Under the pieces are notes generated by a model. That model worked only from the letters and a program-made list of their open reading frames with translations. It made no database searches and was not told the origin of the DNA. DNA of 63,902 bases, counting the filler, from Choristocarpus tenellus KU-1152 (Eukaryota > Protista > Phaeophyceae): NCBI GenBank assembly GCA_964200185.2. It is 10 parts of 10 records of this genome, joined end to end, with 100 filler letters (N's around TTAATTAATTAA, not from the genome) between each part and the next. Parts side by side here need not be neighbours in the genome. Positions count along the whole stretch, not along the records: positions 1 to 17,746 come from CAXNAD020000631.1; 9 more parts are not named here. One strand, given 5' to 3'. Within the stretch, counting starts at the first letter, position 1. Each line of letters starts with the position of its first letter. Position numbers and translations under genes: made by a program. Shown piece after piece: positions 1 through 17,746 of the stretch.

Positions 1-62
1 TCACAACATTGTATTTTGATCCCCAAATGGACGCGGCTCTACCCTCTAAGATACTTTGGCTC
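1..62 (-). mobile_element. Partial copy of MITE family A (Sola-like), one end only
   Basis: ...ccccaaatggacgcggctctaccctctaagatactttggctc is the reverse complement of the family A left end seen at 31989 and 39877. Confidence 0.85.
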
Positions 63-346
63 CACACCCTATCAACCTCACTCGTATTTAGGTTGACTGA
101 TACGCTGGTCACATGGAGACAGACCTTGTAAGCTTGACTGGTATGCTGACCACATACCATCAACCTTTGGCTAATGATATCCTGATCAGATATTCATAAA
201 TGTCATGTTTATGCATTACACTTCATTTTTGTATTAATGAAGTCGTGTAATATATTGGTGCAATAGTAACCCTTTTTCCTATTTTGCTCCCAGAGCTAAC
301 TTTTTGGTTGATCTCAAATCATGTTCACATGACTTCAAGGCTGATC

Positions 347-738
347 AGAAGGGGGGCGATGTGGAAAGGAGGGCTGTCTGCTATATCCTACCGTTATTGC
401 CGTATGCCATCTACCGCAATACCAATTGTTCCTTGTCAGGAATCTTTTTAAGAGACCAATCCAAATGTAATGGATACTCTTCAATCAGATATTTCAAACA
501 TAAAAAGATTCTCTTTGTTGCTTCGTCTTCACATTTTTCTGATCATCCCCCTCTCATGAGATTCTCATCTCTCTGGGATTATCTGCAGTTCTCTGCAGTC
601 TTCTTGCACCTGTCCAACCTTAACCTTGTCCTCTCGATTATGTTTCGTCTTGGGTCTGCCTGGTCCGTCTTGCCTGGTGATTCCCTTCACCACCCCTGCC
701 TGAGTGAACCACGCCGCTATAGAATTATATTATTCACA
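347..738 (+). mobile_element. Polypurine tract plus 3' LTR of an LTR retrotransposon (LTR ~360-738)
   Basis: Purine run agaaggggggcga is directly followed by TGTGGAA, and the segment ends in TTCACA (inverted termini). Its last ~60 bp recur at 61185-61248, where similarity stops at the same TTCACA. Confidence 0.6.
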
Positions 739-1510
739 AAAGTAGAGAAGAAAATCAGTGGCAAGCTTTATTCCACTGGTGGCATTGAGGCCGACACCTC
801 CAATTTCAATTGGCGGAAATATCTGATTTACCCTCAAAATTGTAGGACCGATAATTTATTGCCTATTTTTGATACCCTGTATTAAACCACGATCAATCGA
901 AACCAAATACTGAGTACCGATTCTTGATTGATTGTTTGTCACATGAATATGCGCTGTACGCGCATTTCCCGTGGACTACGGCGATTTGCGCCTCTTAATG
1001 GGGGTGCATTGCATGTAAGTTTCAACTATAATCAATTACTACGTTGAGATTTTTCTGGCCTATTCAACTTACTCAAAAGGTATTTAATTCGCAACAGTAC
1101 TGGAAGTCTAACGAAGAGAACCCATGTGTAATGCATGAATACAAACCAAAGGCTTGAGTCAAACCTGGTCCTATCCAGTCCAAAACACCACGCATCACAT
1201 CTCATACGAAAGAAAAAGAGTACTCAACCAAGAAAAACAAAAAGAAAGACGGCAAGGAAGCAGCATTCCAGCAGGCACCCTGGTTGTGGCAGTGGTTGCT
1301 TGGCTCACCTTACCTGCTTTAGCATGATATGCACAGTTTCCTTGCAATCCACTCTGTCGTGAAACTTGTTGCACCACCAACCACTAATTCGTTCCCCACC
1401 TGTCTGTGTTGGTTGTGCCCCTTGTGCTCCATCCCTCAACTATCATCCCAAACTTCTCAAAATCTTCTTGCAGACACATCCTCCAGTTCTTCTTCTATCT
1501 ACATTGCTTC

Positions 1511-1768
1511 AAGTCAAAGTATCTTAGGGGGTAGAGGCGTGTCCATTTCGGAGGCAAAATCCAATGTTGCGATTTTGATGTAATTTTGACTATCGTGTTT
1601 GTTAGGAAGTGCCAATATCCATGTTCTGGACACACCTTTTCATAACGTATACATTTTACCTACTGAAAACATTTTGGAGTAGGAAAACGTTATTAAAAAA
1701 CCCATGGGAAGCCAAGCCCCAAATGGACAAACAGGGCAAAACTCGTACCCTCTAAGATACTTTCACTC
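1511..1768 (+). mobile_element. MITE family A, full length (~258 bp)
   Basis: TIRs aagtcaaagtatcttagggggta ... taccctctaagatactttcactc; internal sequence shared with the copies at 30138, 31989 and 39877. Confidence 0.9.
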
Positions 1769-4700
1769 TTCCATTTTCCATCCGCAAGCTCCCCAAATAT
1801 TAACAAGTTGGGAAGTCTCTCACCCCCGTGCCTGCAACCAACCCTGCGAATTGGAGTCCATGGTTTTACACTGTCGCCTTGATTATTACATCCCATCTTG
1901 ACAGCATATTCTTAGGACAGTGATCGGTGTATTTCCTGTTTATTGAATCCAACACAATGAACATGGACTTGTGATGGGAGTAAAGTTCCACATACATAGT
2001 GGACTTGGGTGGAGTGCCCATGTCACACAACCACACTACAGAACCCTGAGTACTGCAGCCTTGAGTATTTGAATATTTAGCTCAGGCGATACACCTACCT
2101 GTAATTCTGTCATGTAGTACTAGACTGTACTTTGAGAAATAGCTCCAAGCTTTTTGCACCCTTAAAAAGGGGTATCAAATTCCCTCATTTGTATTAGGCG
2201 CAGAGTTATCCAACTCCAAACGAAGTTGGGGACTGGTCCATATTGCGGGATCCTCACCTCTCTAGTCAATAAACAGACTTTTTCAACCAACATATCTTAA
2301 GACTTGAGTATATCTGATATAATACCCAGATCAGTGCTACACACTAACGCTCCAAAACCATGGTTCTACACTTGTAACAATAGTCTCAATACTTCTTATC
2401 GGTATACTTCGTTGTATCTCACAAGTATTAAAGCACATATCTTGACAAAAAGCTTGGCAGCAGAGCGCCATCCCAAGAACCTTTGCAAATCAGGGCAAAC
2501 ACAAACTCGCCACTACTACCTTAGTCATCTTTCTTCAATGTTTTCTAATCGCATTACGTTATTCCTCTTCATATGTTTGATCACTGCTCTATCCCTTTTC
2601 CCGTTTCAACTATGTGACACGTGGTGATGTAATTCGACTTGGATAGGACCTGGAGTGGGTCAAGGTTTTGTGGAGATGGTAATTAAAATAGTGCACTACA
2701 CCTGGGTTCTTTCAACATCTCTTTTTTCCTTTCTATACTGCCTTTCTGTAATTTCTTCTGCAGTATCTGTATTACCTTCATTTGACCGCTTTATGACCAT
2801 GCACGGGTCTGGGAACCTCCGACTGATGCAAACAGTGCTAGTAAAAGGTAAATATATCATGAAGAACTGTCTACTTGGAGAATGAAGGAACATAGTACTT
2901 TTTAACCTGCACATTCAACACAAAACAAAGTCAGAATTGTTACATTCCCCAAAACACCTATGTGCAGGAATTAGGAGAGTGAACTCCTGATGCCTTCTGG
3001 GTCAAAATCACTTGCTATCGAGAACCACTACAGAAAAGTTTGAAATCGTCCTGATAAAAAAATGGCAGGTTTTGTTTCTCGCCTCAAAGAATAAGACATT
3101 TAAATTTTCAAATTTAGAAATCTCACTTTGGTGGTGGACAACAAAAAAAGGCCTGCATTCAAAAGATCCTGTGATAAATGTACATGAAGAGGAGGATTTT
3201 CTATGGTAGAGATCCAATCAAACAGTTAAGAGTCAGATTTCTATTCTCATGCTTGCCAAATTAATCAACCACTACACATGCAGAGGGTAAAAAACATGGT
3301 TCTCTTGAAAATCGTTTTGTTATTAGGCAACATGTCATTATAACATTCAGTTATGATACCACCAGTTTAGTGTTTTTCGTTTGTTGGTTGCCTCACAATA
3401 TATTAATCCATTTCTTAGCAAATAAAATGAGACAAGACTTTTAGTTAGCAAGGTGGATCACCGAAGGTCTCAGTCACTATTTCACAAGGAGAACCATCCT
3501 GCCCCAGGCTCTTATGTGCTTTCATTCTATCAACATCTACCACTGCTGTTCAGTCATGTATGGCAGGCAAACATGTTGTACAAGCCATCAAACGATCTAG
3601 ATTGCACCGTGGCTCTCCATCTATTTGTTCTTCCCTCTTGACATGTTGCAAGACTATATACTATCAAACCTAAACACTGGAGTACAACATCTTCAAAACA
3701 GAGAGTATTATGCACTAATTGCACTCAAATCATAAACGATGTATGGTGGGTGTACTCACAGATATCGTATAATCTCCCGATCCTATCACATGCAATCCAT
3801 GTCAAACACACACACTGCACATTGCACATGTGCTCTATATCACATCTGAGTGGTGATGCCACTAAAAATGATGAGACTTGATTGAACCGACCTGTGAAAC
3901 AAGTTTTGGGTGCACATTTAAAGCAATGGATTGTTGGACAATCAGAACAAGAGTGTCCTTTCTAAACTTCAAATACAAGCACTTACACTGCAACAAAGTA
4001 AAGCAATTTAAAATTGCTCCAATACTGTTTGTTATACCTTACTGCAAAAATAACAAAAAACAATAAACTATTGAACGTGGTCAGCTTAAAAAATCCTGGA
4101 ATTATCTTCAACAAATCAAACTTGTAGCCAAGAAAAGACAGGTCATGAGACACACCAAGGTCTTATTCTCAGACACCCTGACTAGAAAAAGAAATAGTTC
4201 AACACAAAAGAAAAGGTCGACCAGATGGTTGGCATAGTCAAACAACACAAAGCAAGAATGATTTCTTCCATTGTCAATACTTTAAGGGTATTTATTTGTG
4301 GTTTCCTCATACCCTCAGCAGAATCACTTTCCGACCTACCTCACACTCAATAATCACAACATTGAGAAAACCCCAAACTACGTAGCATTCAACAGTAGCC
4401 AACAACACCATTCAGAACATAATTAGAGATCTAAAGTGGGATGATGCAAGAACTTTATTTACTGCCCTCCTGACTTGAATAAACTATGTTAAATCTATGA
4501 AATAATATTGTAAGGTTAGTTTCCCGATTTTTAGTTGCAAATGAAGATTTGAGTGCTGTAACCCCCAAGTATACGGCATGGCAATCTAAATCATAGTATC
4601 AAAACGCTAAGAATATAAGTAGTGTACTGTACAAATCAAATCACAACCTCTACCTTACTTGAGTAGAGATGGATCATATAGATACACCTTTCATTGGTCA

Positions 4701-5892
4701 TTTAGTCTTTCCTTCCCACAGTGCTTGGACAGATCCAGGAATTGAAAGCTTCAATTGATTCCATAAATCACAAAAAAAAACATTCACCATTTCACACACT
4801 GATTCCCCCTACAGAAAAACATGCTTTCATTAGAATATATCTCTTAACAAGTAGAAATGCTCATAAAACTATCCTCGGTGTCAAATTCGTAAGTCACCAC
4901 TTGTTAAGAACAATGAATCCTATTGGATATTACTAGTATACAGTAGTGATGCCACAACCCTGTGATCAAGGAACTACCAGCAAAAGAGAGACTTCAAAGG
5001 GGAGCTACATGACCTGTGTCACTGCAACTAGCCACATTGCAAGAAACAACCTTCCTGCTGAGAGTGGGGCCTTTTCCTCCAATTGACATACCTGTTTCTT
5101 GTCATGGTCCTCTAGCAGAAGGGCTAGCGCTTGGCCAATCAGAGGCCTTCTTGCTTCCTGATTGAAATAGACCTCCAAACTTCTTTCTAGGGTATTTGGT
5201 GACATGTCTAGCCTGTTCAGCATTTTTTGCAGCATCTTCCAACATTCTGTACCAAGCCAAATGAGGAAGGAACAAGAGGGTCATCAAATCAAATTTGGAA
5301 AAGAAATTTGGGGCTGACTTCTCCACCAGGTAGGGATGTCTTAGGCTGCCATATGATAGTATGGTGTAAGACCATTTTAATTGTGCCATTCATCACTTCG
5401 AAGAATTTCTACACTGTTAGAAAATCAATCAACTTATCTCGCAAGGTAGAGAGAGGTAAGGAAATAGGTGACAATTTCGTGAGATGAAGCAAAACTGATG
5501 ATTTCAAATCCAACCGGTGCGCCTTCTGCCATGACACACACAATATGAATCACCTTCAACTTGAAAACAACATTCATCACTCTAGAGCTCACACCTATAG
5601 CATTGATGTGGACAACCAGAGGCGTCTTTATATTGGATGTGGTAAGGATAGAACATTTCATCAGCAAGAGGAATGATTCTGTTCCTAATTGCTGGTGCTT
5701 GAGCAAGTGTACTGTAAATATCTAGTACTAATTTACTATATAATTTACATCGAAGAGTATAGTGAGGCCAAAAAACGATAACAGACATCATACGGGCAAT
5801 AGAGCCCTCAAGAGAAAGTATGAGCACCCTTGTCAGTTTAGCAATACGGAAACATGGTGAGGCACGAACATAGTTCCAGCCAATAACTTTAG

Positions 5893-6285
5893 GCTGCTGA
5901 AGGTGGTAATAACTTTGATCACAGTAAGTTTGACAGGACAACTCAAGCAAGACACCAACCTGGGTCTTTAATCTAGCCCTTGGTGTACTTCACGGCACTA
6001 AAAAATAGTGTGCATCCTAACGATCTTTTTGAAGATGCACCAATAGAGTTGAACCAAGGGCATGGATTACCACAATGGACACCTAAGAACTACGAAAATA
6101 ATTTTTAAGGTCCGATTCCACTACGCAAAGGTTTTGAGAAATATCGTAATACTGTAACAATAAGAGTAGGATTGTTTGCTGGCTTAAATAAAATTGCAAA
6201 CACTATCGAGAAATTTGGTATCAATGATAATCCTATTGCAGTCGGATCAATAATTCTTGGAGCACTTGAAACTACATTATCTAAG
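5893..6285 (+). pseudogene. mrcA: Decayed fragment of bacterial class A penicillin-binding protein (PBP1A transpeptidase domain), Rickettsiales-like
   Basis: One frame reads AAEGGNNFDHSKFDRTTQARHQPGSLI*PLVYFTALKNSVHPNDLFEDAPIELNQGHGLPQWTPKNYENNF*GPIPLRKGFEKYRNTVTIRVGLFAGLNKIANTIEKFGINDNPIAVGSIILGALETTLSK. This carries the PBP1A motifs FDRxTQAxRQPGSxxKP, WxPKNY, the SxN position and LGxxETT. Stops at 5974 and 6106. Confidence 0.88.
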
Positions 6286-6611
6286 CAGATATTATTGCTG
6301 ATGACTCAACATACTCTTTTCTGAAAAGAAAAAACTTGAGAATGCAACACTGTACTTCACAGTAAACCAAAGCCTGCAAGAGGATGGGACATGAATGAGG
6401 ATAGGAGAGAGGGTTGTTCAGGATATAGGTCACAAAACATTACTTTCAGCAAAAGGTATATCTGAAATTAATCGTTTCTATGTAACATGGGAATATCGCA
6501 TAACACATATGGTAAATCCAGCCACATCCAGAACATACTTGTGCAGTAGGTTTGATGTGGTTTAGTAAGAAAAACAGAACTATTTGGTCTAATCAACCCT
6601 TCTGCCCCTCC

Positions 6612-9600
6612 TTACCCCTGAAGGGTTGCAATGATTTGTTTGAAGTTGAGTCGTTTGTGCATGTCTGAAGACCAACAGTCTGTTAAGAGGCGACCAAACT
6701 CAGGTGGCCAATTCTTGCTGATACGTGGTCTGAACCCACCTATGACCTGGTGTGCATTTGATTTATCAAAAACAAGTCAAGGAGGATCACAGATTAGTAC
6801 CAGATGCTATCACTGTTACTTAGACAACAGGAGGTACTGAACTAAAGCAGTTGAGTAATGACTAAAAGTCGTATGAACAATGCAGTAGAGGTGTAATGCA
6901 GCACGAGGAAATCAAGCCAACCTACAGAAAGTATATTAAGAGGTTTTGATCGCCTACATTGTTTACCATCGTTTTGACTGTAAAACAAAGATGGTTCTTA
7001 CTATGAGCACGGTACAAGGAATTGTAAAAACATTATTACTACCAATCCACAGCATTCATTCACTCTTTCATTCACTCATTCCCAGATTGCAAGAGCATAT
7101 TCTTCAAAGATGGGCACAACTCAATCAGAGCAGGTATCCCACTAACACTCATTTACCCTCAATACTAAAAAACACAAATACTAGCGTGTGTTGAAGTGTT
7201 CCAAAAATACATGCCACCAGAAATTCAAAACAAACCTAAAAAATCGGCAACACCCCCTCTCAACTACTTCTACTCACAAAGTAGACCTACCACATCTTGG
7301 ATGAAACCATCTCGTGCCAAGGCCTCAAAGGGCTTGGTCATGGTTGCCATCTCCCACAAGATCATTGAGAAGCCTGTCCAAACACAGTAGCAGCAATCCA
7401 CCGGCAAACAAAAAAATTAACCAACATTTATCTACAGTGATCTACATTAACTGTACAGTAATCAGCATCAATCTGCTATTGTTTCCAACAAGAGCTCAAG
7501 AATAATGCTGCTATGATCACAGTTGATTTCAATGACATGGCCATCTCATGTTTGTCACACACAAAATGACTCAACACAATAGGTCAATCTAACCCAAAGC
7601 CCAACTCCAACAAGGCTAGCAAACAAAGTCTGAGATCAGGTTTCCCTCCAGATTTATCTGTATTTGAAGGTTTAATATCAGGCAAACCACTCTCTCAATT
7701 CTAAAAAAAGTGTAAGGGTCAGTCTGGCCTAACCAAGGAAATAGGATTACGTCACTCAACAGTGACCACCATCAATCCAAAGGGTGGAAGGAAAATATGA
7801 TACGGAAACTGGTAGCAGTTCCCACAACTGTGGAGTCATGTATGGCACCCTGGTGCACTAGGCATGACATGACAACAAAAGCACAACAACACACATATAC
7901 GCTATTGCTATGTAGTGTCAAAAATGAGTCAGTCAGCTCAGCCCACCAGGTCCAATTAAAAACCCAAATAACAAGCAGTAATGGGCGAGAAGTGGAGAGT
8001 GCTGAAGAGTTTGTTATTAGTTATTAACAGGGCTTATATAAATCCAAACAGTGATAAGCAAGGCATGAACAAGTCATCATTTATATCTACCTCACCATAC
8101 ACATCGGCACTGCCATTGTAGGGCTTTCCCATTGCCACTTCTGGCGCCATATACCTGCATGTCATTGATTTAGTGAAAAACATGGTAGTTTCAGGTTAGA
8201 TAGTCATACACATGATCATAATCAGAGACCAAACATAGAATAAGTGATCAAACTTGAGAGGATGGTAAGGCAAGCACTACAAACTACACAAATAGGGAGA
8301 AGTGATTGCTGCTATACACAAGTATCCACTTTGAACACTCTATGTACTTGAAATATACCTTCCACAGATGTAGCAACCTTAGAACAACAGATGTTACACT
8401 CAGACACGATGTACTTAAAATAGTATTTATTCAAAAACAGTTTAAAACAAGGCCTTAGACGTTACACCCCTCGTAAATAATGGCATTTCTCAAAGTAAGG
8501 GAAGGGACTTCTCCATCCCTGTCAAACTGTGGCCTTTTCTGTATGGAGGTAGTGAACTCCACAAAAGGGAAGTATTCCCATACAACACTCAAAAAAGAAA
8601 TAGTATTGACAAATTTCAATTGAGTATTTCTTCCATTGGTCCCACAAGAACAGGAGCAGTAAAGTATGGCATCTTGCCCAGTTACCTCTAACATTAGGGT
8701 ATACTGCAGTTATAGTAGGCATAGTGACAGCAATCCTTCCCTTAAAATTTCAGATCATTCTTAGAAAGGTCTATACCCCTGGGTGCTAATGATGTACAAC
8801 CTACACCAATTCATCGCCACATTTCTTGATCTGCAACAGCCTCCAAATCCAACTGGAACAGTTTCTGAATAAGTTCACATATTTCAAATATTTCAAATGT
8901 TGCTCCAAATCTTATCGCATTTCACACACACACCTCAAGCTCCCTGTTTCCCCAGTCATCATGTACACCGCCTTGTCGTCCTCCTTCTTACTAATTACCT
9001 ACAAAATATAAGCAATACTAACATCAGTATCAGTAACAGAAGGTACATAATGTTCATGTATGCTGTTATTCATAAGTTATCAACCAGCAAAATTCACCAC
9101 TCCATCACAACTCTCACAACAGTAACTGTAACATTTTGTATTATGTAACATCAAAGGTGCTAACATGTCGACGGTTGGGTTGTGAGGGTTCGAGAGAATT
9201 CATGGGGCAATACTGATTAGAGATACTATTAATACTGAACATGCCTGCCATGCAAGAACATCTATTCGTTGTTGCAGCCCACAACTACTTCTTGTATCTC
9301 TTTAACTCACCTTGCTCAGTCCCATGTCTATGAGTTTAAGGTTGCCAGATGCATCGAAGCCAACGTTGTCAGGCTTGAGGTCTCTGTGCACTACCATCTT
9401 CCCCGGGATGGCGTCGTTGTGCATGTATTGCAGAGCTTCTGCCAACTGCATACCCCGCTTGAGTAGCTCCTCGTACCTTTTTTTATCCCCATAAATAATA
9501 TGTCAACTATTGTTAAAAAAAAAATAATCCAATTTTGATCCAGATTCTTCCATTCCACGTAATGTTGGTTTGACTTCTGTCCAAGATTCTAGAGTCCACT

Positions 9601-12600
9601 GCAGTCAACAACAACATTCCATAAAGAGATGATCTGTGCTATAGATTACTACGGCATACTCTGAAGTACACAAGAGGTCCATCAATGATACTTCACAACA
9701 CACATACAAAAGAACACACACATACCCAAAGGGTCGCTTGTGCCGGAATCGCCGACGCCTGTCTCTGATTGCAAGGGCATTTCCACATTGCTGTGCCAGT
9801 GTTCCCCCATCGAGACGCTCTAACAAGATGAAGTGCTCTGGTCGACTCCCTGCACCTATGATACGGACAATGTTTGGATGCTGCAGGCGCATTAGGATGC
9901 TCATCTCCAGCTCTAACTCCTGGGCACGGAGAAGGGTGGTCAAGGTAAGGGGATAACAAGTATGTGTGCGCTATCATTTGTGTAGTTTAATGTGTAATAT
10001 TGCTTGTAAGAGAGTGAGTGTGTATGGGGTGAGAGTACTGCCGTATCAATACAGCACAAGCAACACCTTGATAAATAGTTTATTTTTCTCATGCACCAAC
10101 AATAGTGTTTCATAAAAATTGACAAAATCAAAGCACCAAATCCAGCAAAAGAATATAAATGTGATACGTAAGAGGAAAAAAATACACACACAACTACGTG
10201 TCACTCTAATATAGTTCAAGTGCATTGATGTATTGATGTATCATTTCCCCCAGAATAAAGTTTGGAATAAATCAAGATGGTGTACCTATCCAGGAGCTGC
10301 CACATCTACTCAAACCTACTAATGTAAGGATGAGATCCGTCTAAACCCAACCAAATTGATATATAACCAATATATCAAATGAAACCTTACAATCTTAGCA
10401 TTCCCTCTCCACAAACAAATTGGATGACAATTTGTTGTTTGTGACTAAATTTTCTGCCACGACAATTCAGTACAATTACAAAAAACGTTTCAATCAAATC
10501 CTCACTTCCCCAAAGGAACTTTATATAAACGTGATTTGCATCTTCAGGAAGTTGATACCATTCTCTTTCACTTATTGAATGTTTGCTTATCAATTCCTTC
10601 GGATTATGTCCAAATCTATCAAGGTGTGTTCATGACCCATAATACTATATTGTCAATGTCCTATTTTGGGTGCACAAAAAAACCCATTGCCCAGTGGTTT
10701 GATGTAAAGATATGGAGGATAAACATACAAACACATCACATTACCTTTCCCAGGAAAGTTCATTCTCTAACAGCACCTACGGCCTGGGCAAACCTCCCCT
10801 ACACCCCCCTGGACGGGCAGATGAACAGGCCTCCAAATATCTTCATTCTAGTATGGACTTTCTCAATTCCAACGGCAATAGGAACCAGCACCAACAAATA
10901 CATGTCAAATAAGAGAAGATAAGAGTACTAGGATACAAACAAATTGCACCTGCTTTTATTGAAAAAATTGTTCAAGTTATATAATAGTACGACAAAGTTG
11001 AACATTGACGTGATTGCTTCCACCATAGGGGGGAAACCATGTATCCCTCATAGACAACCAATGATCAAAGAAAAAGAAGAGTATTTTTTGTTGCTAGTAG
11101 CCCTTAGCCTAGAGGACGAGATGGACAAAAACATGTACTCTACCCTACATCCTGCAGTGTGAATCTTACAGTACAATTAAGAGCACAATCCCATCATCAT
11201 TCCCAAGATTCACTGCAGTAGTACAGTAGAGGTGTAACAGTGTCAACATATTGAATTGGCACCATCCAAGGAAAACTGAATCCATTTTCTGCTAATTCAG
11301 ACAGAGTTTCTGTAACCAAGCACAATTGAGAAAATTTGCTAAGTAAGGTCATAACACGGTGTGAGGAATGATACTACTACACCAAATATCATATACCTTC
11401 TTGACAATATCCTTGTCCTCTACATCCTTTCGTACAAGCTTGACTACCACAGGAATGGTCTCAAGGAAGGCAGTGTAGATGGTGCACCGGCTACCATTGA
11501 CCATGAACTCCACATCACTAAGCTCATCCCACCGCACCTGGGCCAAAAAAAATATAAATTGGCCAATAAAAATATAAATTTATGCATATTTTTACATACC
11601 AGGGTGATTTGGTTTTATATATTCAATGGATAATGTAAACAAGTTTTCCTGATTTTGACCCACATGGACACCCCTGGCGTAGACACACACACACACAGAT
11701 ACTTTGGGTCTCTAATTCGTCAATAATTCAATAATACAACACAACACCAGTACCTTCACAGAATAATGTAACAGTTTCAAGGACAATTCCTTCCTGCTAT
11801 GCTATGATAGAGATAAAAACACTACTTTTGTAGTAGTATCAGCTACATTTCACCAACTAAATTACATCAACTCCACTCAGCCATCATCTGAGAACATTTC
11901 TACTTTGTACTTCACGAACCCTCTGTGTGTGTGTGTGTGTGTGTGTGTGTTATATTGAGTGAACTTTGCCTGCATAGTGTACATATTGAGTGAAGCAACA
12001 CACCCAGTCATACTTCTTTTCCTCCACATGTTAAAAAAAAGCTGTATCAGAATAGTCGAGCTGTGCATCAGTCTGACTCTCAAATGAACCCAAATACCTT
12101 TCACTCAGTTGGGCACACAAATGACGTAAAAAAAACAATAATCAGTCTACTTCTCAATCTACTCTTTACAACATGCTGCCGTAACAGGAACCAATAGAAG
12201 CCCTCACGCCATCCCAGGTGAAAGCTCTCTCAGAGTAGACTTCTAACTCTAAGTTGTACCACGGCCATAATAAGACTGCAACGCATACATGCCTAATTTA
12301 TCCCTTTTTCTTGTCGTGTTTTACCAATTAGGAACACTTAGTCTTGTTCTTATTGAATGGGTTAGGGTTAGGGTTAGCCTTGTTCTTATTGAATGGGCAC
12401 ACTTCACGGTTATCAGATTCGGAAGTAGTAAGTAGTAGTGAGTAGTACAGTAAGAGTTCTGTTTAAAACCAGTTAGTAATACAACATGTAACAATAATAT
12501 CCACTTCAATAACTATTTGATGGAACATCACTACAGGATGGAGGGAAGTAGCAGGAGTCACCTAATTGTCATGTTGGTAGTTGGTAGATGAGATTTTCAC

Positions 12601-13047
12601 AACGCAAGTCTTTCTTGACGTCACACCTGCAAAAAAATACACTATAGACCAGATCCCAGAGGAGCAGGATATTCATGGATGAATCCTTGATTTAAGTAAC
12701 AGAGAATTGCTGCCTCTCATGGTTGGGATAAAACACAAACAGGGTCCAAGATGATATAGCTCAAGAGCTAATTTGACACCACCTTCCACTGGAACACTAC
12801 AATATAATTATTGTAAAGCAGAGCACAGTACTATCGATACCCACTTAAACTGTGTTACCACTACCAACTATTCCAGCCTTCAAGTAACACAAAAAACTCT
12901 CACATCTTCACGAACAAGGAAGCTCCCATCCTTTGGCCGAGTCACTGCTCCTTTAACTTCTTCTGTCTCTTTTTCCTCTCCACCATCTTTGACTGCTTTG
13001 GATTTAATGGAATTGCTCAGAGTCTGAAGTTTGGGGGACAGGAGCAT
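6612..13047 (-). CDS. Ser/Thr (tyrosine-kinase-like) protein kinase, 8 exons, ~328 aa
   Basis: Phase-consistent GT-AG exons 13047-12904, 11537-11397, 9919-9726, 9476-9311, 8998-8934, 8154-8096, 7373-7291, 6746-6612 (987 nt). Motifs [43 protein letters not shown]. The first exon is less certain, and the gene could continue past a possible donor at 6615. Confidence 0.9.
11540..11710 (+). mobile_element. Degenerate MITE family B copy in a kinase intron
   Basis: gggtgatttggtt...ggataatgtaa...ttttcctgattttgacccacatggacacccctggcgtagac...cagatactttgggtc matches the right half of 23306-23483. Confidence 0.65.
12343..12397 (+). repeat. Short interstitial telomeric (TTAGGG) tract between two 19-bp direct repeats
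   Basis: cttgttcttattgaatggg - ttagggttagggttagc - cttgttcttattgaatggg. Confidence 0.85.
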
Positions 13048-13722
13048 GTCAATAGTGCACTTTCAGAGTGGGGAAGTTTTGACTTTGCTGGTTTCCAAAA
13101 AATTGGCACTAAGCGAACCCCAAGATATTATTATGTATCAAAAATACTAATAAAAACATCGTTCTACTTACTGAAGCGCTTGTTTGATTTGCAACACCCT
13201 CACGGGTAATTCCTATGGAAAACTGATACGATATAAGAAACTGATATAATATAAGAAAGGGTTTAGGTAAATCAGGCAGGGATGACCAACTGAGGTCGTA
13301 TTTTCATAAATGCAGCATACCAAGTAATTACTGATTATCTGCGCAAATGACTCTCCCCCACCAATACCGCCACAAAAATAACATAATGGACTGGACTGGA
13401 CTAGACTAGACTGGACTGGACTAGAATGGACTAAAGACCAACACATAACCAATGAACTAACACAACATATATGTGACATCAAGAGCAGCACCAGCACAAA
13501 TACAGTGACCAAGTGGTCATCCAGGTCATCCAAATATCCAACACACATGTAGATCAATTGAGCAGTCTGGCACTCAGCATAGCCATTCTGAACTTATACT
13601 ACAATATGCAGTCATGATTTATCAGATAATCTTAGATTGATCATGGGTAGGCAAGCTCAAAGTTAACTATCATTGGATCCTGGATTGATCTTTCAGTCTG
13701 AACTTTACCAAAAATTCCTCAC

Positions 13723-13863
13723 CATCTGAGAGAAGGTTTCAATGATTGCATCCTCTTCTTTTTTGTTGAAAGCAGGGAATGCTGTCGCTGCCGCATATCC
13801 AGCAGCCCTGCACAGCTGCTCAAGGACCCCAACCGCAGTATCATAGCGCTGGATGCTCATCAT
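13723..13863 (-). CDS. Probable coding exon, possibly the true first exon of the kinase
   Basis: ATG-initiated 47 codons (MMSIQRYDTAVGVLEQLCRAAGY...IIETFSQM) ending at donor GTGAGG in phase 0. An in-frame AG at ~13060 would join it to [10 protein letters not shown]. Confidence 0.5.
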
Positions 13864-15777
13864 TATAATAGCAAAGGAAAAGGAAAAGTGACACAGTGCA
13901 ATAACAAACCGTACATGACAAAAGAGCACAATAGTTAGTCAGCTTTTGGGGCGGAAATCGATCAATAGTTAGTTGTTGCGCTTTGCTTGCAAAAAGAACT
14001 CTCTACAATAGCCCCCAGTACGTCAATGATGGTGAAAATATCAAATGGACAAACATAAGAGCAAGTGAAATATACTTTCATTGCCGCCAACAATGCACCT
14101 CCAACAGAAATTGAGTGTATTGTTTTCGAACTCTAAACTGAACTCACAGCGATAGTCATGATACAAAAACGAAACAATTTATGTCATTCCAAGTCCCCCA
14201 CCTTTCCCCCTGAATGCCATGCATTATTTCTATTTTTCTTCTACTTCTATTGATGCGTAATCAATGTCATTAAAAAGGCATTCAAGTTTTTGATAATACT
14301 GAACAGAAGGAATGCAAAAGGGGTGGGATCTTGCTTAATCTCTTACATGAACGTCATTGACTGCAAAGAAGACGAAGCAGAGGTCCTTGAGGTGTGCGTC
14401 CAGACTGATTGGGAGCGCCACAGCAGTGTTCAGAGGCAGATCTGGGTGCAGCGGTGTGTTAGGGTGCTCTGAGGTGAACCACAGGATATCCTCTGCCATC
14501 CGTGCTTGCTGCACCATCTAACGGTTTAGAGGGTACGCCAGTTCGATAAGGCCAGGAAGATGGACGCTAACGTTGGCGTTGGCATGAACCCATTGCAGCA
14601 AGCGTGGGTATCTGCTATTGCAACTTGAACCTATCATGCGAGCACAAACCCTCCATCAGCCCGTAAGGACTGGTGCGCTCTTCTGGCGTATTGGGCAAAT
14701 AAATAATGTGCATGTTAGACTTGAACCTCAACCTGACGTACATTAGGTGACAGGTGGTGACGGGCATTGTTGTTCTCAACAGTCAAGACACTGCCCAGGA
14801 TCTCCATATACGATACAACAGTGGCCTTCTTTACGAACACTTGAAGACACTTCGGCTGCGACGCCTTGCCATCCTCTGGTCCAAGTCCCCCGACGTAGGT
14901 CCACATCTGTGTACGAGGAACAGTTCCTAGTTATCGTTTGGAGGCAAGGAGATGTAACGAATAGAAAATAGCAACAGACACACGATCAATAACGCAGAGT
15001 TCAAGGGAGCATTGCCTTTCCCTCAACCAGCTACACATCGCCAACATGTGCTCGCCCATTCTCTCACCTCAGCTATCTCGAAGTGCAAGAGTTCGCACAA
15101 GGTTTCCAGACATCGGTCTACTGCAGCTTGATGGGCTGATGACAAGCTGAACCCCTCCAAGGTGTTCTACAGATGAGCGGAAAAACAACGGTAAGGGGGG
15201 GGTGACACATAGTTGAAGGTTACTCATTGAGTAAGCATGAACACAACGGCACCTTAATCTTACCATTTCCTGAGTCGATGATAGAGAGCCCTGTCCACTG
15301 GGAAGAATCAGGTTTGATGTCCTGGCCATTACAGTATCATTAGGTTGGACACGACCACTTCCTTGACTTCTGGTAGATCGTTGATCTGACTTTAGGGTCA
15401 TAGATAGTACCCTAACTTCAAGATCTTTGCAATATGCAAAGCACGGTTTAGGTGGTTGAGAAGGACGTCACACACCATTCACAAGTTAACTGAGAAAATT
15501 GGGATGGAGTCCAAATCTTTCTTTGTCTGGATTGTTTCTCCCCATCTACCTTCCCAACCACTGACTTAACCTGAGATTCCACATCCCCAAGAGTAATACA
15601 ACTGAATATTCTTGGAAATCGTTAACACAAAAAATATCGACAAATGAAATTTCAAGTTCCCAGTTTGGAATTCAAGTACAATTAGGGTTTTCTGTTTATT
15701 TCTACATATGTATGTGTGTTTGCGTTATTATGTGCTCACTCTTGTAGATGTCTCACAGAAAAACCAAAACTAAAACC

Positions 15778-16053
15778 AGTGAAAGTTTATGAAGTAATCT
15801 GAGTTTTGTGGGCGGAAGAATTCTGGTTGGCTAGGGGCACAGGACACGGGAAGGTAGTGGAAAGAAAAAGAAGGAAGCAGGAAGAGAACGAATAGTTAAG
15901 GAATGACTCTAAGAGAAGGGGGAAAAGGTTAAAAGAAATGAGTGGTAGGAAGAGGGAAGGGGAAGGATTGATCAGTATCTAACAAGAGGGCTGAGAACCA
16001 GGGGTACAGGACGAGGAGGGTGAGAACAAGAAAACCTCCGAGCAAGCTCTCGC
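15778..16053 (+). repeat. Purine-rich dispersed repeat, copy 1
   Basis: gaaagtttatgaagtaatctga...aatgagtggtagg...aacctccgagcaagctctc is shared with 26548-26832. Confidence 0.75.
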
Positions 16054-17683
16054 CGGAGTAGATCAAGACAGATCCCCAACAATCTTTCCGACAGCTGGAA
16101 GGGAGAAAGGTCCGTGGAGAGGGGCGGGGATGCTTGAGAACTGGATACTGAAAAATGGTAAGAAAAGTTCCACAAGGTAAGGGGGCTGGTGACTGAGACG
16201 ATGAAGAACATTTTGGATAGGTGTAGGGTAGGTATGGAATATGGGTAGTGAAGTGGGTACATTCAGATATAATACAAGTGGTACCTGGGGAAATCCATAG
16301 AACAAGAAATTACGAAAGACTGACCACGATGTTATGGTGGAGTGATTTAAGTTTAGATGTGTAAAAGATGGATCAGCCGTTTCCCACCGTAGTGGCCCTG
16401 GTAGACATGATAGTACATGCTAATTCGGTAAGTTACAAATGCTGATATTTTTTAGCTTAGTACACAGATTAAAAAGGGAAAGGGTTGAGGGTCCTGCCAG
16501 AGTTACAGTCTAAGGGGTTGACGGGAACTAGTAGTACAGTGCGACAGTTATGCCACAAACATGGTTATCCCATGGAGATCACGATAAAAATGGGAAAGTT
16601 AATGGGTCAGGGTAGGGGTAGCGTACCTGCGCTAATCTTGTGGAGTAAGTGCAGTTTAGCTTGAAAATTGGACCGGGACTGATGCTAGGTTTATATCGAT
16701 TGGTGGCATCGCGTGGATTTGTTTTCCGCTGCTTACATCATTCAACCTAAACCATAGGGCAAAAGAAAATCGAATAGCGTGGGCTCACTGTAGGATGATG
16801 TAGAGGGGACCATTCCGTTAAAGAGTAACGCGTGAAAGTTACGAGGTTAGTGATGGACGTTTACTAAGCACAGGCTACATGTGAATCAGTAGTTATGTCA
16901 TTACGAGTAGCCATAGAATTTATGGATTATAGCTACAAACTGGGAGATAACGTGGCATAGAAAACAAAACAAATAAGAAAACCTGCATAGGTATTCCAGA
17001 GTACCGAATGAGGCCATGAGGTAGGTGGAGTTTCTAGGTGGAGTCATAGCTACGAAATTAAGTACAGATAATGACAGAGTCCCGAATGGACATGCAGTAG
17101 GTGGGAATTTTAGGTGGAGTGAACGTCAGGAAAGTAAGAACTGGGGATTTGCAGTAGATGTATGTTAAAAAAAACTGAGATGCGATAGTTGAAAGAAGAA
17201 TGGACTGGGCGAGAACATATCAAAAGTATGCAGATAAGAAGGTGATTGATGATGTCTGTTGTCTTCACCGGTGAAAAGTGCCTGTAGTAAACGCTTTTAT
17301 ATAAGATCATTTTTTTTTTGTTTAATTTGAAGTCCCAGTTCAGAAGGAACGGGCATACTCAGATTGGACAGGCGCAATTTGAATGAGATTGTATTCTGTG
17401 ATCTTGTATACGTACATTTTAGAGAAAAACATGGAGATGAGTTAATCACATTTGTGATTATGGAGGTTGGAACTGGGGTCCCATTTATTCTAGACCATGT
17501 CAGAGATGTACGTTTTGCAACTTTTGAAGATGTTTTAGAAGGAGTAAGTACATACTAAGATTAGCCCAGATGCAAATTGTTTCTCGTAGTATTCTGTGCT
17601 TTTTGGAATAAAACATCCCAAGAAAAACAAGGGTATGTGTTGATCGATTCTGAACCTAGTCGAAGTTATATATTTTTATTAAA

Positions 17684-17746
17684 GAGCCAAAGTATCTTAG
17701 AGGGTAGAGCCGCGTCCATTTGGGGATCAATATACAATGTTGTGAT
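17684..17746 (+). mobile_element. MITE family A left end, cut by contig end
   Basis: gagccaaagtatcttagagggtagagccgcgtccatttgggg. Confidence 0.85.

Follow-up and report, generated by a model that had tools for sequence, protein, structure and literature searches.

A decayed piece of a Rickettsiaceae PBP1A gene inside a kinase-gene intron of Choristocarpus tenellus

What is known of rickettsial DNA that has come to lie in the genomes of its hosts? In nematodes and arthropods, nuclear Wolbachia transfers (nuwts) are short pieces of Rickettsiales DNA that decay within the host nuclear genome. In the green alga Volvox carteri, a nuclear region of ~9 kb holds fragments of rickettsial 16S, murB, ddlB and ftsQ that are related to algal endosymbionts, and the strains that carry this region are symbiont-free (PMC4324946; 2015). 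Eustigmatophytes have a Phycorickettsia-derived ebo operon in their plastids and a nuclear plastid-targeted ACP (PMC6367104). For brown algae, a Ca. Megaira genome has been assembled from the reads of Nemacystus decipiens (PMC10132079); the Phaeoexplorer preprint mentions neither Rickettsia nor Megaira and leaves out singleton transfers, and in the open-access literature we found no report of an insert of rickettsial DNA in any brown alga. Green algae and animals already offer examples of DNA leaking in this way from symbiont to host.

Here we describe a fragment of a rickettsial PBP1A gene in Choristocarpus tenellus KU-1152. The window, that is, the whole stretch of DNA analysed, comprises 63,902 nucleotides in ten joined parts of assembly GCA_964200185.2, and the fragment lies in the first of these (positions 1-17,746; CAXNAD020000631.1). 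We conclude that symbiont DNA has genuinely been inserted into the nuclear genome here and that the insert is non-functional. Like the V. carteri region, it is nuclear DNA from Rickettsiaceae related to the Megaira group, it derives from a peptidoglycan gene (murB and ddlB in Volvox), and it is truncated and probably non-functional. However, the V. carteri region extends over ~9 kb and four genes, is 88-92% identical to extant symbionts, is mostly free of premature stops and belongs to a green alga, whereas the C. tenellus insert is a single 394-bp piece that is 80% identical to its nearest relative, contains two stops, lies in an intron of an apparently expressed gene, has a probable brown alga as its host and comes from a different, unnamed donor lineage. 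Similarly, the insert resembles the nuwts in being a short, decaying nuclear fragment of Rickettsiales DNA: it is joined to host DNA on both sides in contigs of three samples, it is fragmentary and has lost constraint, and the orthologous intron is without it in the one distant orthologue available (L025). In this instance, the donor belongs to the Rickettsiaceae and the host is a stramenopile alga. Likewise, the eustigmatophyte genes represent a transfer from Rickettsiaceae to an ochrophyte that can be read as the footprint of a past symbiosis; those genes are whole, retained and apparently functional, whereas the PBP1A piece is a dead fragment.

Three stop-free pieces of the fragment, searched separately, match NCBIfam model TIGR02074 (PBP1A family) in register (model positions 274-300, 302-342 and 344-401; E values of 6e-4, 6e-6 and 5e-7, respectively), and a 65-homologue profile reaches 202.9 bits on the fragment frame, whereas none of 20 shuffled windows exceeds -0.9. 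The piece is thus homologous to the transpeptidase domain of class A PBPs. This bears out the first-pass annotation, which had seen PBP1A transpeptidase motifs in the frame, and every lesion that it had listed (a TAG in place of the SxxK lysine, YRN in place of SxN and a second stop) is present at the positions given in Table 1. The frame (5893-6285, plus strand) counts 131 codons including the stops, and the ends of the fragment are sharp, with exact positions that are uncertain by a few bases. Compared with its nearest relatives among the Rickettsiaceae class A PBP1A proteins (MrcA; TIGR02074), namely P0039 (locus L021) and P0010 (locus L020), it aligns ungapped over the 131 codons with 73-74% protein and 78-80% nucleotide identity. 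It covers only 17% of the gene, being 131 of 788 codons with two stops rather than a full-length open frame with glycosyltransferase and transpeptidase domains; the glycosyltransferase and OB domains are lacking, the fragment stops short of the KTG motif, and the SxxK and SxN motifs are both broken. The fragment has no role as a PBP, and the insert is almost certainly without function. Searches of the PDB with the fragment returned PBP1A matches that are weak only, and Pfam gave no match to the three short stop-free pieces. The same 65-homologue profile detects PBP1A nowhere else in the window, and 841 reading frames taken from the bacterial loci, compared with the window, matched nothing else in it.

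Two candidate extensions of this description were rejected. Homology that appeared by tblastn to reach upstream to position 5848 was discarded when the anchored extension proved no better than random pieces of the window, 10-100% of the null pieces scoring equally high. Base composition was likewise discarded as a marker of the insert: the first-pass annotation had called the frame AT-rich, but its GC content of 0.378 is that of the host introns (0.34-0.40) and hence not distinctive, and 19% of windows of equal size have GC as low or lower. By codon position, the GC content of the fragment is still bacterial (0.47/0.38/0.28).

Table 1. Coordinates of the PBP1A fragment and of the kinase gene that contains it (positions in the window)
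Feature	Position	Strand	Remarks
Pseudogenised Rickettsiaceae PBP1A (mrcA) fragment	5892..6285	+	Transpeptidase residues 433-563 of 788; indels absent
SxxK motif position	5965..5976	+	Ser codon retained; Lys position is TAG stop, 5974-5976
Second in-frame stop, TAA	6106..6108	+	Relatives have Leu here
SxN motif position	6142..6150	+	YRN instead
Host spliceosomal intron with the insert	5247..6615	-	1369 nt, GT..AG; skipped in spliced contig
Last coding kinase exon	5092..5246	-	Stop codon 5102-5104; in spliced contig
Kinase exon upstream of the insert	6616..6746	-	End of PF07714 domain; in spliced contig
Kinase exon	7291..7373	-	In spliced contig
Kinase exon, APE motif	8096..8154	-	Loose end of spliced contig maps here
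Kinase exon, activation loop	8934..8998	-	Predicted from orthologue
Kinase exon, catalytic HRD loop	9311..9476	-	PF00069, E = 9e-11
Kinase exon	9720..9919	-	Donor at 9720 or 9726; 79-82% identity to 4 proteins of other assemblies
Most upstream kinase exon identified	11397..11537	-	Upstream end of the eight-exon frame

Where in the host genome does the fragment lie? Eight exons on the minus strand, from 11537 to 5092, form an open frame of ~329 residues with canonical splice sites, the continuity of the frame having been checked locally only; searched singly against families, exons match the kinase families PF00069 and PF07714. The four homologues of the largest exon come from loci that repeat the exon series. 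Direct evidence for splicing comes from a contig of one sequencing run, X3, with a depth of 235, which joins 7289-7374, 6616-6744 and 5090-5246; both stretches that it skips end in CT..AC, which is to say that they are GT..AG introns of the minus strand. Since this contig is spliced, we take X3 to be an RNA sample, and the kinase gene appears to be expressed. The insert lies antisense within the last coding intron, with 330 bp between it and the splice donor (6615) and 645 bp between it and the acceptor. The first-pass annotation had put the fragment about 330 bp away from the kinase gene; it is in fact inside the gene, and 330 bp is its distance to the donor. The same annotation's statement that fragment and intron-containing gene share a gap-free contig holds, as positions 1-17746 contain no N and splicing is seen. 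L025 carries an intron that matches this one in position and phase but contains no PBP1A; the intron is therefore older than the insert, as judged from this one distant orthologue. Another of the orthologous loci, L024, stems from BioSample SAMN23429951, whose accession falls among those of the bull-kelp metagenomes of PMC9238374; in that study, host DNA made up 39-50% of the whole-tissue samples. A phase of intron gain is common to brown algae and Schizocladia, whose intron positions are stable (bioRxiv 10.1101/2024.02.19.579948). The orthologues make a brown alga or a close relative the probable host. The 3' UTR of the kinase gene probably has an intron as well (3892-5091, minus strand); it would start ~10 nt past the stop codon, as indicated by a loose end of an X3 contig, which maps to 3860-3889.

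What was the donor? A degenerate pattern derived from the fragment retrieved 19 loci in GTDB genomes, of which 16 are titled Rickettsia or Rickettsiaceae, and a protein search seeded with the best of these loci returned 120 homologues. Protein identity to the fragment is highest for P0010 (74%) and P0039 (73%), followed by Ca. Megaera venefica (62%), the Nemacystus-associated Megaira (55%), Rickettsia and Tisiphia (52-56%), and Paracoccus and Sinorhizobium (42-44%). At the nucleotide level, L021 and L020 are 80% and 78% identical, respectively, to 5892-6285 with no gap, and in both the PBP1A gene follows miaB in an ordinary bacterial setting. In a mixture-model tree, from which 80 of the 120 homologues (near-duplicates, thinning) were omitted, the fragment, P0039 and P0010 form a group with 100/100 support that is nested in a clade (100/99) with both named Megaira; the placement is stable with two alphaproteobacterial outgroups, and because the fragment fills only 16% of the tree columns and has a long branch, a finer placement is not warranted. 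In the first tree, the fragment had fallen near the root, a case of long-branch attraction to a distant Bdellovibrionota outgroup (L004) that vanished once this outgroup was removed. AU tests reject grouping of the fragment with the M. venefica group (p = 0.0005), with the Nemacystus Megaira (p = 0.0005) and with Rickettsia/Tisiphia/Trichorickettsia (p = 1e-7). Best matches and tree position both lie inside the Rickettsiaceae, outgroups included, and the fragment belongs not to Ca. Megaira in the strict sense but to a sister group within the wider clade. Judged from this one gene fragment, the donor was an unnamed member of the Rickettsiaceae that falls on the Ca. Megaira side. The attribution to Rickettsiales that the first-pass annotation had made is thereby confirmed and narrowed, and the tree with alphaproteobacterial PBP1A that it had in view leaves the fragment inside the Rickettsiaceae.

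Searches for closer relatives went no further than these two loci. A direct locus search in genomes with the third stop-free piece yielded no relative, nor did a clade-specific DNA pattern in metagenomes, and a wider metagenome search found nothing nearer to the fragment than L021 and L020. L021 itself (GCA_024449895.1, contig JAANSX014500328.1) is a bacterial-looking contig of 5 kb with miaB, PBP1A and DUF772, from an assembly with very many contigs; its source organism could point to the present host of the donor lineage. Some of the other loci merit a remark on their own account. L011 (JAWUXW010000175.1) is a contig with a Rickettsiaceae-type PBP1A inside a MAG titled Paraglaciecola sp., probably a binning error, and L005 (JBEGTS010000028.1) is a Rickettsia-type PBP1A in a MAG titled Pseudomonadota only. 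In L023 (5001-7882), from the cluster nearest to the donor, PBP1A is split into several called genes; the neighbouring cox1 is split as well, so that long-read indel errors are a likelier cause than pseudogenisation.

How did the fragment enter the kinase gene? We propose that a 394-bp chromosomal piece of a Megaira-related member of the Rickettsiaceae was joined into the pre-existing intron and was then inherited. The donor would have been an intracellular symbiont of the host lineage, whose DNA, freed on lysis, would have reached the nucleus and been captured at a double-strand break by end-joining. Capture during break repair is suggested by the sharp ends of the fragment and by the absence of terminal repeats, target-site duplication and mobile-element sequence: neither kind of repeat was found at the fragment ends, and no element genes lie beside the insert, as they would if it had been borne by a transposon or virus. 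The piece would have been dead on arrival, since it represents 17% of the gene, has no start and no glycosyltransferase domain, and ends before KTG, and it would persist because the intron is spliced out. After insertion, very roughly 18-28 neutral substitutions would have accumulated. We consider this account likely as a whole, the endosymbiont route included.

The insertion could be just as real if the rickettsial donor had lived in a protist that grew on the alga or merely occurred alongside it, and if its DNA had arrived by way of a wound, a virus or a mobile element. Ca. Megaira does infect ciliates too (PMC10132079), and the fragment does not group with the Megaira associated with Nemacystus (p-AU 0.0005). 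Against such a route, the fragment has no relatives in viral contigs, the intron has no phage match, the insert flanks have no Pfam matches and there are no terminal repeats; moreover, for the insertion to be heritable, the DNA would have to reach the nucleus of a reproductive cell, and an intracellular resident would do so most easily. We therefore regard a protist's symbiont as an unlikely source and retain the host's own endosymbiont as the preferred one.

When did the gene decay? Private changes were counted at sites where two of the three sequences (the fragment, L021 and L020) agree. In the fragment, such changes number 20 synonymous and 26 non-synonymous (pN/pS 0.38), besides its two stops; the corresponding counts are 14 and 11 in L021 (pN/pS 0.23) and 26 and 8 in L020 (pN/pS 0.09), so that the non-synonymous excess of the fragment over the two relatives pooled is significant (Fisher p = 0.017). 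Of the 54 columns that are conserved in 95% of a set of 105 homologues, the fragment departs at eight, any single homologue at five or fewer, and L020, L021 and L006 at none. The first-pass annotation had described the insertion as neutrally decaying; relaxed constraint stands (pN/pS 0.38; 8/54), but the branch is not fully neutral, as its pN/pS lies below the neutral expectation (p = 0.002). These values fit a relaxation of constraint in the fragment, with much of the divergence being the donor's own, given a pN/pS below neutral and zero indels in 393 bp. A crude two-phase reading, uncorrected for multiple hits and transition bias, adds ~4.5-7% of neutral change, or 18-28 substitutions, to the divergence of the donor. 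The absence of indels is mildly odd, and the transfer may be younger than this estimate, or the decay may have begun in the bacterium. Taken to its end, the latter thought would make the insertion real and recent, the gene having been pseudogenised beforehand, in a degenerating symbiont on its way to giving up peptidoglycan synthesis, so that the decay would be bacterial rather than nuclear. The indel-free 393 bp, the bacterial GC by codon position and the somewhat raised pN/pS of the sister sequence L021 all lean that way. Yet the close relatives retrieved as proteins (L020, L021 and L006) keep every conserved column, and Rickettsiaceae have a deletion bias, such that an old pseudogene free of indels would be unexpected among them. 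Decay inside the bacterium thus strikes us as improbable.

Is the insertion itself genuine? The stretch is present in public contigs (Logan) of three runs (X1, X2 and X3), which represent three samples of one study. In X1, which is probably the source of the window and hence not independent, the whole stretch lies in one contig of 7849 nt. Record 5 of X2 (5949-6510) bridges the right junction and record 12 of X3 (5383-6119) bridges the left one, each with more than 200 nt on either side, so that each junction is bridged in one sample besides X1, with no differing letters listed. The X2 bridging contig has a depth of 6.2, in line with 4.6-6.5 for its neighbours (one depth figure is given per contig). 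In none of the three runs did we find a contig with a loose end at either junction, or one of at least 85% identity that continues into bacterial flanks, the contigs of these runs being informative about the presence, not the absence, of sequence. Bridging contigs in two further samples and a place inside a spliced host intron thus uphold what had been claimed at the outset, namely integration and not contamination, and we are highly confident that the fragment is truly integrated into the host genome. Algal cultures do harbour bacteria, the contigs come from short reads only and X1 is probably the window's own source, all of which would suit a chimera in which the reads of a co-cultured bacterium were fused into a host contig. 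Such an artefact is nevertheless very improbable, as it would require two false joins 394 bp apart within one intron, each junction recurs, with no differing letters, in one of the other two samples, no contig of at least 85% identity runs on into bacterial flanks and the PBP1A of a living bacterium would not have two stops. Least probable of all, and scarcely credible, is co-option of the fragment by the kinase gene, whether as antisense RNA, cryptic exon or regulatory element, which could appeal to the depth of the X3 contig at 5383-6119 (10.6, versus 2.7-6.6 in other intronic contigs) and to a T-rich AG that precedes the left end of the fragment on the plus strand, but contig depth gives neither strand nor level, no contig joint uses the insert, there is no Rfam match and the changes show a loss of constraint.

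The part of the window that carries the insert has several other features that we record as such. A 62-nt repeat stands at both of its ends (1-62 and 17684-17746) in inverted orientation with 98% complementarity and recurs at 1512-1573 (82-84%), with 1746-1770 listed among its sites; positions 1-1572 might represent a non-autonomous DNA element bounded by terminal inverted repeats, and it seems to be at the 62-nt repeat that the assembly breaks. The region 14380-15450 is GC-rich (0.45-0.54) and has no long open frame, the frame at 15072-15467 (minus strand) having no Pfam match; a retroelement in decay, or else an unmapped gene, may account for it. At 12359-12376, internal to the contig, lie three telomere-like GGGTTA units that are part of a 36-nt tandem repeat. 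Finally, 15750-17550 has a strong purine and G skew on the plus strand (GC skew up to 0.47), and none of four frames in it had a long-protein or Pfam match where tested.

What, then, does the insert tell us about the alga? Its value lies in evidence of symbiosis and not in new molecular biology. By a narrow preference, we read it as a heritable footprint, which would place an unnamed Megaira-related member of the Rickettsiaceae, at some time in the past, inside the reproductive cells of a brown alga or of the closest relatives of brown algae; the fragment may then be one among many of its sort in the genome. If this reading is true, it would add host-integrated DNA to brown-algal cases that, in the literature searched, are known from reads (Nemacystus). 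Such an insert is a marker of past infection that can be tested by PCR and that allows dating across strains. Rickettsiales in seaweed sequencing runs may be residents of the alga or of protists that live on it, and DNA integrated into the host genome bears directly on that question.
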